DNA of 64,000 nucleotides, taken from contig NC_043015.1 of the NCBI RefSeq assembly GCF_006345805.1, positions 42,098,001 through 42,162,000 on the forward strand, in the 5' to 3' direction. Positions 36,524 through 45,323 of this stretch are shown in pieces; positions within the stretch are counted from its first letter, which is position 1; every line of letters starts with the position of its first letter. The notes below the pieces were generated by a model that saw nothing but the letters and a program-made list of their open reading frames with translations, ran no database searches and was not told where the DNA came from. This DNA is from Octopus sinensis. Taxonomy: Eukaryota. The position numbers were made by a program, and so were the translations under genes.

Positions 36524-36602
36524 ATGATTTCAATCCTTGCCAAGATCATCGCGGTTGCAGTTCTGGTGCAATTTGCATTCAGTGCAGTTATTCAAGATGT
36601 AG
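36524..36602 (+). CDS. Exon 1 (signal peptide) of secreted Cys-rich VWC/SVWC-like protein
   Basis: MISILAKIIAVAVLVQFAFSAVIQDV+G then GTAAGT donor; phase 1 matches the next exon (G|AT = Asp). Confidence 0.75.
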
Positions 36603-37131
36603 GTAAGTGATCATGAAACTATTATTATCATTGTTATTATTATTATTATTACTTCTTTCTTTCTTGCTTCAAATTTTCTTCCGTTTCTCGCCGAGTGTTT
36701 TCCGTACACCTAGGGCAGAGAAGCTCATTGCATGCATTCCCAGATTACACACGCAAATTCAAAGATAAAATATGTATTTAAAAATTAATATAGAAATAAA
36801 TTCATGGATGGATGTTGTTTTCACAGCGATAATGCTCTTCTCAGTACATGAGCCGTTCCAGTTAACACGATTTTTTGCACTTCCTGCAGGGACGGTAAGC
36901 CTGGTATCATTTTCAAATAGGTTTCAGTGCCTTTTTTTATCATTCCTAGAGATCCTACAATCACTGGTACTGTAGTCACCTTGAGATGCCACATTTTTCA
37001 ATTTATATTAGCAAGTCTTTATATTTACTGATCTTGTCAAATTCTTTCGCCGCTATATTGTGATCGCAATATTATTATCATTATCATTATTATTATTGTT
37101 ATTATTATTATTATTATCATTATTATTATTA

Positions 37132-37181
<50 letters not shown>

Positions 37182-37317
37182 ATTATTATTAATATTATGA
37201 TTATTATTGTTGTTGTTGTTGTTATTGTTGTTACTATTATTATTATTGTTATTACTATCATCATCATCATCATTATCATTATCATTATTAGTATTGTTAT
37301 TATTATTATTATATTAA

Positions 37318-39150
37318 CGTCGCGACCTTTACTGTTAGTAGATGATTGGAACAACGTCTTGGAGCCACGTTTGGACTGTGTGGAGCTAGCTAATAGAACA
37401 GTGGATGGAAAAAGCCTCGCAGATCTGCTCAAACATTTCCAACTGTCTGTCAGGTCCCGACTGGACTTCCCAGATGAGCCAATTTGGGCGTGGACGAATC
37501 GCATCGGGTCATCCAGATCGTATCTAGACAAGGTACTTTGTAGGCCAGTAGATAAGGATAGCATACGGTGTCCATTTTTCAAACTCGTCAGCTAGACAGG
37601 CCACACGTTTGTGGTTTGAAAGGTCAACGTAAATGGGCTTAGACGGCAGGGACCCGGTTACTAGAAGCTGATTGCGTCAGTTGCAGTGTACCAAACTTAC
37701 AGAGATCGGATTAAAGAATTCGTTAAACGAGCCTCGGTGGCGGCAATCGTCAACAGCAAATGATGGTACGACCGGGAAAAAAGCAATTAGAGTAGAATCA
37801 GTTAGGTTTAGTAAGGTATTAGTGACAGAAAGGGGAAAAAATAGAAGGAAACTTGGAAACTTAGAAGAGGCGCTTAGGACAGGCATTGCAACCGACGCAC
37901 TGGCGGCGTGATTGGCCCTCCAATAATTCTTCAACGCTAAACATGAAGGTTTCATTGTCGGAACTAAGGAGTGTGCTCTAAGGCAAGAGGGAACAAAAAC
38001 CACTCGAAGCGCGCGAGTGGCAGAGGTATAACATGGTAACAAAGCCACAATTCGGTCTTTGGTAGACCAAAATGGACGTACGGTAGTCGAGCCCGAGCAG
38101 GTGTGTGCGGCATTTCAGCAGCTCTTCGCCCAACTGTTTGGAAAGAATGGCAATCCGGAATGCAAGATGGACTCCAGTACCTACCTGAACATGCCACGAT
38201 TCTCGGCAAGTGGGGTGAGGCGTTGAGAAATGCCGACAACAGCCGCGGAAATACGAGATGCGATGATGGGCTGCACAGGAAGAAAATCGCCTGCTTTGGA
38301 TGGTCTGCCCCACGAGATTCTTTGACGGCGACTTTGCAAAGATCTACAGCAACTGGGAGCAGAACTGGAGTATCCATAACTCTGTGGGCCGAGGGGCGGT
38401 AGCACTACTGAGAAAGGACCAAGACAAGAGGACCTAAATAGAACTTTCGGCCCATAACGCTGCCGGTCGCAGATTTCAAACTTTTGGCCAAAGTATTAAC
38501 AAAGTGGTTGGTTCTTGTCGAAGGACTGATTGGTGATGCGCAAACATGCGCAATCCCAAGCAGATCCATCCACGGCAACCACCACCACATACGATACATA
38601 ATAGATAGAATGGGTAAGGAAGCTGGCATGGGTGTGGCACTGATCAATTTGGGTCCCGTTTTACGTGGTTATATAGTTGCTATGTACAGTGACATTTGCT
38701 CGGTAGTTCGGGAGATTGGTTACCTATCTGAACCATTCAACATCATGCGTTCGGTCCGTCAAGGATGCCCACTCTCGTCTCTTCTGTATGTACTGGCTTT
38801 AGAGCCATTTCTGCGGAAATTGGAGGCGTTGAGCGGCATCCCGTTTGAAGTAGGAGTTGAGAGGACTATGTCGGCACACACAGACGATGTCACCGTGATA
38901 GTATTGAACAGCAAGCACATAGACTTGGATGGCGCTGCTCTAAAAGGTTATGAGGCGCTGACGGGAGCAAACTTTATCAAGAAAAGTCTGTGGGTCTGTT
39001 GGCACCTAGAATGGCAGGTCCATACCATCCAATAACGTCGTGGGAGGCTGGACAGAAGGACCAGTTAAACTGCTCGGTATCTGGTTCGGTCTAGATCTCC
39101 AGATCGAGAACTGGGACGAGGTGACGAGCAGGATGGCCAATGTTAGCTAG
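37318..39150 (+). mobile_element. Degenerate Tx1/L1-like LINE ORF2 in intron 1
   Basis: DWNNVL...SRSYLD (APE); AKVL...RSVRQGCPLSSLLYVLALEP...HTDDVTV (RT). Confidence 0.85.
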
Positions 39151-39407
39151 AAATGACCAAAGGACTTTAGCATCCATATGTTTTAAGAGTTGAAAGTAAT
39201 TATATGTTTGTATTTGCTAACTGTTGTAGCCCTTCTTCATTTGTTTTATGTGTTGTCCGAAATATTCTCAACACTCTTCCCTCTGTCCATATTTCAAAAG
39301 CTTCTAGTTTTTCAGACAGTTTTCGTCCATATCCATGTTTCTTCGATATATAAAAGTGTGGGCCTTATGTAACGTTTAACAAAGCCTTGTCCGTGTTTTT
39401 GTATCTA

Positions 39408-39814
39408 TTGGGTTGTCTGGAAAGTTCGTGCCGATTAATAGTAGCTTACCTTTCGACTTATTTTAGAACATGGTTGAGTCCATAAAATAGGATTTGACTA
39501 CACCTCCGTTTAGAGCACAGTTTAAGCTATCTTTTCATGGAAGAAGGTTTCTGTTCCTATAACTTGTGTTAATTTTGTAACCCTTTAAAATGGAAGATAA
39601 GAAAGTTCATTTTCGGCACTTGATGCTTTGGGAACCAGACAAAAATTGCTGCAGCTTGGCTGGGATGTGTTACCCCACCCTCCATATTCACCAGATATTG
39701 CTCCTTCGGATTTCCACTTATTCAGGTCTCTGCAGAATAGTCTTAATGGTTAAAATTTCAATTCCTTGGATGACGTAAAAAGATACCATGATGAATTCTT
39801 TGCCATGAAACCTG

Positions 39815-39862
<48 letters not shown>

Positions 39863-42909: not shown

Positions 42910-43075
42910 TACGACAGGCTTCTTTCAGTTTCCGTCTACCAAATCCACTCACAAGGCATTGGTCGGCCCGGGGCTATAGAAGAAGACACTTGCCCAAGAT
43001 GCCACGCAGTGGGACTGAACCCGGAACCATGTGGTTGGTAAGCAAGCTACTTACCACACAGCCACTCCTGCGCCT
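42655..43075 (-). mobile_element. SINE family A
   Basis: Homology to 15453-15912. Confidence 0.85.
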
Positions 43076-43121
43076 TATATTATTAATTTATATTTATTAA
43101 TTATATGTGCTTCTTTTATAG

Positions 43122-43269
43122 ATTGTCCAGAGGGCGTTCAGATCAATGAATTATTTCGTTATCAGGGACAGTGTTCGGAGTGCAACTGTACAGGGACTTT
43201 GGACTTTACCGTTAATAAAGAAACTGGACTTCCAAATATGCATATCTTAATGAAGGGACCGTGTAAAAC
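43122..43269 (+). CDS. Exon 2 of secreted VWC/SVWC-like protein
   Basis: ttcttttatag acceptor, GTAAGT donor, 148 nt, phase 1 to 2; CPEGVQINELFRYQGQCSECNCTG...GPCK. Confidence 0.85.
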
Positions 43270-43344
43270 GTAAGTAGCTTCGAAATTCTACACAAACAAC
43301 AAACTATCATAAGTACACACGCATTCGATCATATACATACAACG

Positions 43345-43910
43345 ATGTCATGGGCAAACTGAGGCCCGCGGGACATCCTTAACGGCGCACCAAACTAAGA
43401 ATAACCTTGAATTTAGTAGTTCAGGCCCGCGGGACATCCTGAACGGCACACCAAACTAAGAATAACCTTGAATTTAGTAGTTCAGGCCCGCGGGACATCC
43501 TGAACGGCACACCAAACTAAGAATAACCTTGAATTTAGTAGTTCAGGCCCGCGGGACACCCTGAACGGCACACCAAATTAAGAATAACCTTGAATTTAGT
43601 AGTTCAGGCCCGCGGGACACCCTGAACGGCACACCAAACTAAGAATAACCTTGAATTTAGTAGTTCAGGCCCGCGGGACACCCTGAACGGCACACCAAAC
43701 TAAGAATAACCTTGAATTTAGTAGTTCAGGCCCGCGGGACACCCTGAACGGCGCACCAAACTAAGAATAACCTTGAATTTAGTAGTTCAGGCCCGCGGGA
43801 CATCCTGAACGGCACACCAAACTAAGAATAACCTTGAATTTAGTAGTTCGGCCTACCTGATGATGGGCCATGTCTCATGCGACCCGATTCTCGGATAGTT
43901 TGCCTATGCC
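43345..43910. mobile_element. hAT-like MITE with internal 61-bp x8 tandem array (43363-43850)
   Basis: catgggcaaact / agtttgcctatgcctg TIR-like ends; right flank CTCTAGAA; eight 61-bp units starting GGCCCGCGG. Confidence 0.65.
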
Positions 43911-45220
43911 TGCTCTAGAAGATCAAATGATCTGCTAGACATACCAGCCAAATGTCCTGAAACTTAAGCTTAGAATCACATCATAGTAAAAAGGAGGGAC
44001 ACGTTGAATAATGTAGTTTTAAATATAAGAATAGGCAGGATGGTCTCAACTGGAACGCCTTTGGCTGCAGTTATTCTCCATCAAAGATTTTTGGCGAATA
44101 GATATAATCTAAAGCAACAATCTCTCTCTCTCTCTCCTTCTCTCTTTCTCCTCTCTCTCTCTCTCTCTCACATGCACAAAAACATAAACACGAGGCAACG
44201 AGGGAGCCTATATGTGCTCGCTTACCTTGCTAGAAATACTAAGTAAATCAGCCTCACTCCTCAACAAACTGGCCTATAAAAAGAGACTTACTGCTGCGGG
44301 ATTAAATAGACTACCTTGCATCTCCTTAATCAATTATTTCTACTACAGCACCTTGGATTTAGGAGATGGAAACTGTGTGGAATCCCTTCGTGTTTATGAG
44401 TCTTTCTCTGTCTATGTATCTATCTTTCTGTCTTACTACTTATTTGTGTGTGTGCGCACATATGTATATATGGGAGTATGTGGGCATGTGTGCGTAGTGG
44501 GGCGAAGGAAACAGGTGAAGGGGGTGTCCTACCGGATTAATTAGTCCTACATACACATAGTTTGATGGGGGGTGGGGAAATGGCCACAGCTGGTTTCTTT
44601 TTCATCAGACGCCTGCTGGTCTGATGTAAATCTGCGCTAGGATTAAAATAACAACGACAAAAACAACAACAGCAACAATAACAACACAAACACCACCTTC
44701 AACAACAACACCAACAACAGTGGAGACGCAATGGCCCATTGGTTAGGGCAGCGGACTCGCGGTTTCGTTGTGTGTTTATTGAGCGAAAACACCTAAAGCT
44801 CCACGAAGCTCCGGCAGAGGGTGGTGGCGACCCCTGTTGTACTCTTTCGCCCCAACTTTCTCTGACCCTTTCTTCTTGTTTCTTGTCCCCGACTTCCTAC
44901 GCAACCTCTGACCCTGGATGCGCATTCATCCATCCGTCGATGCTCTCGGTGTCGGGGGGGGGGGGGGTTGACCTGCTTTCTCTTCTGCGGGTCTTACGAA
45001 TAGCAAAGGACCACGTTTCGGACTTCTCCCATCTTGCGGGCTCTGGGACGAAGACCGCTTCGCTCAACAGTAAGAGCAAGAACAACAACAAATACAGCCG
45101 CAGCCCCGGCAATATATTTCCCAGACAACTAAATTTGATGTTCCTTAGTTATGGCATGTTTCTAACACAGCCAAATCGTTTCTTTCATTTCAATATTTCT
45201 ATCTTATTCCTTTATTATAG

Positions 45221-45323
45221 ATGCGGTTCACAAATGCATAACTGTGCGGAAACGGAGATAGTCAATCCCGATGCAGATTATCCGGCTTGTTGTGAGGAAA
45301 GGTGTGTAACCAACTCCGGGTAA
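45221..45323 (+). CDS. Exon 3 (terminal) of secreted VWC/SVWC-like protein
   Basis: tttattatag acceptor, phase 2 (AC|A = Thr); CGSQMHNC...DADYPACCEERCVTNSG*. Confidence 0.85.

Follow-up and report, generated by a model that had tools for sequence, protein, structure and literature searches.

SVWC proteins, so called for their single von Willebrand factor type C domain, consist of a signal peptide followed by one domain with eight cysteines and four disulfides, and are mostly found in arthropods, with a few examples in molluscs (PMC13115929, PMC11515477). Their mature peptide measures around 65–163 aa, and the pattern described in Musca reads C-(18,23)-C-(4)-C-(10,16)-C-(6,23)-C-(8,13)-X-P-X-C-C-(1,5)-C (PMC11515477). 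Arthropod members serve in pattern recognition as receptors, as opsonins or as signals resembling cytokines (PMC13115929, PMC11515477). The classical VWC domain is held by the disulfides C1-C4, C2-C8, C3-C5, C6-C9 and C7-C10, and is divided into a rigid subdomain 1 and a flexible subdomain 2 (PMC6270503). Among molluscs, granularin of Lymnaea stagnalis is described as an opsonin that is small, secreted and built of one VWC domain (Smit et al. 2004, as cited in PMC11515477). Here, we analyze a gene of Octopus sinensis that probably encodes a free-standing, secreted relative of these proteins. It lies on the + strand of a 64,000-nt stretch of contig NC_043015.1 (positions 42,098,001 to 42,162,000), hereafter called the window, whose coordinates are used throughout.

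The coding sequence is split into three exons, at 36524–36602, 43122–43269 and 45221–45323. Spliced by script, they give 79 + 148 + 103 = 330 nt, and the scripted translation of this product is a protein of 109 aa followed by TAA. This is exactly the protein put forward in a first-pass annotation of the window, and its proposals for the GT-AG borders of both introns and for their phases (1 and 2) are borne out as well. The coding part of exon 1 (79 nt) begins with Met1 and stops one base into codon 27, with the GT donor at 36603, and encodes the signal peptide MISILAKIIAVAVLVQFAFS(A) plus 5–6 mature residues. Its start codon at 36524 carries an A at −3 and is the first ATG 3′ of a TATA-like run (TATATATAT, 36430–36438, +) located about 94 nt upstream, which from its sequence may be the core promoter. 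A bacterial promoter/terminator scan was set aside, the gene being eukaryotic. Intron 1 (36603–43121, 6519 nt, phase 1) is rich in microsatellites and holds a copy of a short interspersed nuclear element (SINE) of about 420 bp at 42657–43080. Exon 2 (148 nt) encodes Cys1 to Cys5, including the CxxCxC motif and the variable loop between C4 and C5, and would correspond to the part of a VWC domain that makes up subdomain 1. Intron 2 (43270–45220, 1951 nt, phase 2) falls between Cys5 and Cys6 (C-K-T|C). The coding part of exon 3 (103 nt) covers the remaining cysteines, Cys6 to Cys10, contains the VNPDxxYPxCCExxC motif, which is conserved, and ends with the TAA at 45321–45323. Two AATAAA polyadenylation signals follow at 45386–45391 and 45403–45408 (+), 63 and 80 nt 3′ of the stop.

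The spliced product is 100% identical to RefSeq XP_029648486.1, the product of the uncharacterized LOC115222397 of O. sinensis. The gene range annotated in chromosome CM016877.1 (assembly GCA_006345805.1) covers the same 8800 bases as the spliced model, and 28.8 kb of CM016877.1 around the gene are 100% identical to positions 26524–55323 of the window, which is therefore a part of this chromosome. Among 5.8 billion protein clusters, one was matched, which groups XP_029648486.1 with CAI9736640.1 (109 aa) and CAI9736639.1 (144 aa) of O. vulgaris. The gene is LOC115222397, already annotated with exactly this coding sequence. The description of the protein as hidden has to be dropped, as RefSeq holds the identical protein and UniRef names its O. 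bimaculoides homologue a VWFC-domain protein. Its absence from the list of open reading frames (ORFs) is explained by exons of 26–49 codons in a prokaryote-style list of uninterrupted ORFs. A chance chain of ORFs is excluded because of the identity to RefSeq, the same annotated range and the existence of homologues with the same exon structure in Argonauta hians.

These homologues were found with an exhaustive HMMER (phmmer) scan of 1.84 billion representative proteins, which returned seven matches. Three of them were discarded, being repetitive proteins aligned through short low-complexity stretches. All true matches are octopod: the O. vulgaris orthologue (96% identity; named “VWC domain-containing protein 2-like” in UniRef), the O. 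bimaculoides protein A0A0L8G8C6 (100 aa, 43% identity; “VWFC domain-containing protein”) and two proteins of A. hians with around 35% identity (one of 100 and one of 102 aa), here called P0006 and P0008. A profile built from the five family sequences retrieved no further member, which agrees with the lineage restriction suggested in the first-pass annotation. The two A. hians genes form a tandem pair: they share scaffold and strand, with about 12 kb between them. Both have three exons, GT-AG introns and phases 1 and 2 at homologous positions, intron 1 following the signal peptide and intron 2 separating Cys5 from Cys6, where two VWC subdomains would meet. The exon encoding the signal peptide is kept in O. 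vulgaris, O. bimaculoides and A. hians, and the choice of first exon was thus correct. The gene is single-copy in each Octopus species. Run against the window by tblastn, the four family proteins matched the three exons alone, so that the proposed paralogue search yielded no second copy there.

According to our in silico analysis, the protein starts with a hydrophobic, signal-like segment, as had been reported, and no second Pfam domain follows. Judged by eye, by the −3/−1 rule and by homologue alignment (A-F-[S/G/C], then cleavage), the signal peptide is more likely cleaved after Ser20 than after Ala21, and the mature protein counts 88–89 aa. The ten cysteines are present, with the CxxCxC motif at C44/C47/C49 (C44-S-E-C47-N-C49), YPACC at 96–100 and the N48-C-T sequon; these features and the downstream AATAAA stand where the first-pass annotation had placed them. 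The sequon, shared by O. sinensis and O. vulgaris, recurs in no other homologue. Mature family proteins are acidic to near neutral (isoelectric point, pI, 4.1–6.4).

All ten cysteines are invariant in the five members, which share the spacing C-14/15-C-2-C-1-C-16..24-C-2-C-6-C-14..16-CC-3-C. Only the C4-C5 loop (16–24 residues) differs much in length. The “long loop insert” of the first-pass annotation is this segment, which is indeed long; it is really a hypervariable loop. Between lineages, the signal peptide is 43%–62% identical, versus 17%–29% for the mature residues other than cysteine. By these alignments, the family is fast-evolving except in its signal peptide, its cysteine frame and the VNPDxxYPxCCE motif.

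We then compared the family with the SVWC and VWC profiles. The best match of the O. sinensis protein is the Pfam SVWC family PF15430 (13.6 bits, E 0.082 for the full length; 14.9 bits for the mature form). PF15430 is also the sole Pfam match of the O. bimaculoides protein (17.3 and 18.2 bits, full-length and mature), of A. hians P0006 (19.0 and 20.2 bits, E 0.0007) and of the family consensus (17.0 bits). The P0006 alignment spans positions 7–66 of the 66 in the hidden Markov model and ends on the last Cys. SVWC is the only recurrent Pfam match, found in three of the four lineages, mature and full-length forms both counted. The kinship to VWC and SVWC noted in the first-pass annotation holds to this extent, with every score below 27 bits and nothing for the VWC family PF00093.

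The likeness to arthropod SVWC proteins (PF15430; Vago, MdSVWC1, shrimp and silkworm SVWCs) lies in the architecture: a predicted signal peptide and one small Cys-rich domain of the VWC type standing alone, a mature size within 65–163 aa, the C-x4-C spacing and the C-terminal x-P-x-C-C-x(1–5)-C. A relaxed form of the Musca pattern matches all family members, its C-x4-C and xPxCC-x3-C parts being satisfied. The octopod family departs from SVWC in its cysteine count, with ten invariant residues against eight; eight of them fit the SVWC frame and two are extra (C47 with C74 or C77). Moreover, its C1-C2 gap is shorter (14–15 vs. 18–23) and its central loop longer, its host is a mollusc whereas SVWC is overwhelmingly arthropod, and its scores stay under the Pfam cut-off.

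The two extra cysteines sit at the positions of C3 and C5 in classical VWC. With classical VWC or chordin-like repeats (crossveinless-2 VWC1, procollagen IIA exon 2), the family shares the ten cysteines, the C2xxC3xC4 motif and the C8C9 pair followed by C10. It differs from them by CCxxxC in place of CCxxC, by the 16–24 residues of the C4-C5 loop, and by a domain that is free-standing, not part of a multidomain matrix protein, and devoid of a conserved N-terminal clip. An AlphaFold2 model of the mature A. hians homologue (mean predicted local distance difference test, pLDDT, 69.4; predicted template modelling score, pTM, 0.48) contains two long and several short strands, with pLDDT 77–83 in the N-terminal half and 56–62 in the C-terminal half. 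This model agrees qualitatively with the rigid subdomain 1 and the flexible subdomain 2 of VWC (PMC6270503), and the predicted beta-rich N-terminal and looser C-terminal halves would resemble these subdomains. Granularin compares by description, not by sequence: it is molluscan, small and secreted, and has one VWC-type domain. The exhaustive scan gave no gastropod relative of the octopus protein at E ≤ 0.001.

Taken as a whole, the locus is best explained as an annotated octopod gene for a secreted SVWC-like protein, probably an extracellular binding or immune factor, an explanation we favor with moderate confidence. This is a blend of two levels: high confidence in the gene model and the family assignment, and a much more tentative stance on the immune role. 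Cleavage of the 109-aa product would yield an acidic protein of about 9.7 kDa (pI around 4.4) that is presumably secreted. The mature protein would form one cysteine-knotted module belonging to the VWC superfamily, aligning best, below threshold, with the arthropod-type SVWC while keeping all ten classical VWC cysteines. Because the two cysteines lacking in SVWC correspond to the C3-C5 disulfide of VWC, five disulfides are predicted, namely C28-C49, C44-C99, C47-C74, C77-C100 and C84-C104. On this comparison, the simplest reading would be a free-standing module of the VWC superfamily, nearest to SVWC, with the fifth disulfide retained. The protein may function as an extracellular binding protein of humoral defence, that is an opsonin, a pattern-recognition factor or a cytokine-like factor. 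This role is suggested by analogy with the arthropod SVWC proteins and the snail opsonin granularin; taken on its own, we consider it possible, at somewhat less than even chances.

Several results weigh against this explanation. All PF15430 scores (13.6–20.2 bits, E 0.0007–0.08) remain under the curated gathering threshold of 27 bits, and A. hians P0008 does not match PF15430. Neither any member nor the consensus matches PF00093 at E ≤ 10, while the VWC domains of COL1A1 and COL2A1, entered by hand as controls, score 62 bits on PF00093 without any SVWC match. Aligned by hhalign to these two collagen domains, the family reaches a probability of 4%, which is weak evidence because this narrow profile holds only two sequences. 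The strict Musca pattern matches none of the members and fails at the first gap (14–15) and at the third (16–24), the latter being beyond the limit in all but A. hians P0006 (16). The PROSITE VWFC_1 pattern, which we take to consist of a C8C9xxC10 motif and canonical loop lengths, fails in all members, which have CC-x3-C, a C4-C5 gap of 16–24 and a C5-C6 gap of 2; it matches the COL2A1 control. The UniProt name “VWFC domain-containing protein” presumably comes from the PROSITE VWFC_2 profile, its usual basis. The family is strictly a member of neither Pfam family, SVWC or VWC, and a relation to them, below threshold, is plausible from the alignments. For the O. sinensis protein itself, AlphaFold2 with the five-sequence alignment gives a poor model (pLDDT 59.6, pTM 0.33), and Foldseek searches of the PDB with both models find nothing better than E = 2. 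Given such weak models and a domain poor in regular structure, we do not count the Foldseek result as a negative. By sequence, the PDB yields only chance matches (a nanobody; the QGxCGSCW motif of cathepsin) at E ≥ 0.16. In addition, a look-up of the exact protein in public assemblies returns the genome record and no RNA-derived contig, and literature searches on the locus, the accessions and octopus with SVWC or VWFC bring up no paper on this gene. Finally, the immune role would be pure analogy, and the SVWC architecture is also found in venom and nutrient-responsive proteins.

To follow the divergence of the gene over a short distance, O. sinensis was compared with O. vulgaris. In the coding sequence, 7 of 327 sites differ, in four codons (22, 59, 85 and 94, at 36587–89, 43217–19, 45246–48 and 45273–75, +). 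All four changes alter the residue (V22Y, K59P, A85T and A94V) and none touches a Cys. The proportion of differing nonsynonymous sites (pN) is 0.023 versus 0.015 for synonymous sites (pS), and the non-coding divergence is 1.6% over about 19.9 kb aligned. There is no sign of purifying selection outside the cysteines over this distance, four events giving little power. Three of the four changed codons carry two substitutions, which under independent placement has P ~2e-5. In the same alignment, 32% of non-coding mismatches also lie within 2 nt of another. Positive selection is not claimed from the codon clustering, because the clustering of non-coding mismatches brings the corrected P to ~0.02 on four events, and the excess of double changes is suggestive at most.

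Other roles could fit the same protein, for which the first-pass annotation had suggested a lineage-specific secreted effector of the saliva or venom, the skin or immunity. It could be a salivary or venom component that the posterior salivary gland would produce for injection into prey, comparable to SVWC-type peptides that are reported from the venoms of scorpions, spiders, centipedes and lacewings; SVWC proteins are listed as venom components of arthropods. The family has the pattern typical of venom peptide families, in which the signal peptide is conserved, the cysteine frame fixed and the mature region hypervariable, and the restriction to one lineage, the tandem duplication in Argonauta and a pN no lower than pS in the sister-species comparison point the same way. 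However, each Octopus species has one copy and no expanded toxin cluster, the octopus salivary proteome literature that we searched makes no mention of the protein, and the substitution evidence amounts to four codons and is not significant. We regard a venom function as quite unlikely. Secreted proteins of reproduction and chemosensation, too, typically evolve fast around a conserved frame, and the VWC-like frame could be a stable scaffold for another lineage-specific secreted role (reproductive or egg-coat, chemical cue, skin or sucker matrix). The gene has no direct tie to immunity, which leaves room for such a role, but the only family resemblance found is to SVWC; we hold it to be unlikely, if slightly less so than venom.

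A modulator of bone morphogenetic protein (BMP) or transforming growth factor-beta signaling, that is a free-standing VWC domain binding BMP ligands like chordin, crossveinless-2 or brorin (VWC2), would account for the ten cysteines and the CxxCxC motif, which BMP-binding VWC domains also have, and for the UniRef names “VWC domain-containing protein 2-like” and “VWFC domain-containing protein” on its relatives. Developmental regulators are normally slow-evolving and widespread, whereas this family shows only 43% identity between two Octopus species, is undetected outside octopods, and has no PF00093 or VWC2L match. In VWC1 of crossveinless-2, an 8-residue clip before Cys1 is needed for high-affinity binding of BMP-2 (PMC6270503); in the octopod proteins, the segment before Cys1 is short (3–7 residues) and unconserved. 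The lack of a conserved N-terminal clip and of a PF00093 match, together with the very fast evolution, disfavors this explanation, and we find it highly improbable. On a broader scale, the octopod family could be an independent, rapidly diversifying lineage of free-standing VWC proteins that still carry the C3-C5 disulfide, a living intermediate between ten-Cys VWC and eight-Cys SVWC. Under diversifying selection, octopods would have recruited it as an effector in venom or immunity. Such a recruitment would explain both the 43% identity between two Octopus species and replacements at a rate at least neutral between sisters; we think it doubtful. The secreted SVWC-like binding or immune factor remains our preferred explanation.

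The locus also contains a candidate alternative terminal exon. In O. vulgaris, the 144-aa isoform CAI9736639.1 leaves exon 3 after CCEE and joins an exon encoding SCSAFSVDICNLWGIDAELLPFPPRSHCRARKQNGNLTLAVV. An internal GT donor after 45301 (45301/45302) would serve this isoform, in which Cys10 is replaced by an unrelated 42-aa tail. A peptide identical to this tail is encoded in the O. sinensis window at 50596–50722 (+), with an AG acceptor at 50594–95 and a TAG stop at 50720–22. This candidate coding exon is followed, within a few hundred bases, by the 3′ end of a convergent gene on the minus strand, which extends from around 51007 to beyond 55323. According to the genes called in both species, its product is a protein kinase of 470 aa (Pfam Pkinase / PK_Tyr_Ser-Thr). 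No HRDLK or DFG kinase motifs were found in ORF stretches of at least 25 codons in the window, and the catalytic exons may be located outside it. On the other side, the O. vulgaris locus has a called gene of 179 aa without Pfam match about 9 kb upstream of the VWC-like gene, at 318–928 (−) of the O. vulgaris record (around 25.7–26.3 kb in the window).

The introns and flanks are rich in microsatellites and tandem repeats. About 20 copies or fragments of the ~420-bp SINE, which has a tRNA-like head, are present in the window on both strands with 69%–92% identity (42657–43080, 45515–45924, 54841–55242, 23081–23496, 34996–35403, 60748–61137 and around 14 more). One copy ends 41 nt 5′ of exon 2 and another begins around 190 nt past the stop codon. 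Intron 2 carries a tandem array at 43362–43853 (a 61-bp unit repeated 8.1 times, 97% identity). Since the array of O. vulgaris can be aligned to it at several offsets of 61 nt, the two species probably differ in the number of copies. The intergenic sequence that separates the alternative exon from the VWC-like gene holds 2.4 copies of a 200-bp unit with 91% identity (49153–49618). A reverse-transcriptase fragment of a non-LTR (long terminal repeat) retrotransposon (…VIYLNFAKAFGKDD…, …GVPQGTVLGPLLF…) lies inside the kinase gene region at 53311–53887 (+), and a copy with 43%–44% identity is found in intron 2 of the A. hians P0008 gene (10896–11258 of its locus). When the flanks were compared with the Argonauta loci by tblastx, only SINE, reverse-transcriptase and low-complexity matches were obtained. 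Finally, about 2 kb at around 56700–58800 are imperfect (TG/CA)-rich low-complexity sequence with spurious ORFs of 300–570 codons on both strands (poly Cys-Val / His-Thr).

The gene model as such adds nothing new, since RefSeq holds the identical protein, and no long-standing open question is touched. What is mildly useful is the picture of the family: its copy number, its detection in octopods only, its divergence around a ten-Cys frame and its affinity to SVWC. If expressed in hemocytes or in the salivary gland, the protein would be a tractable small secreted factor for cephalopod immunology or toxinology, and would also bear on the origin of the eight-cysteine SVWC domain from VWC.

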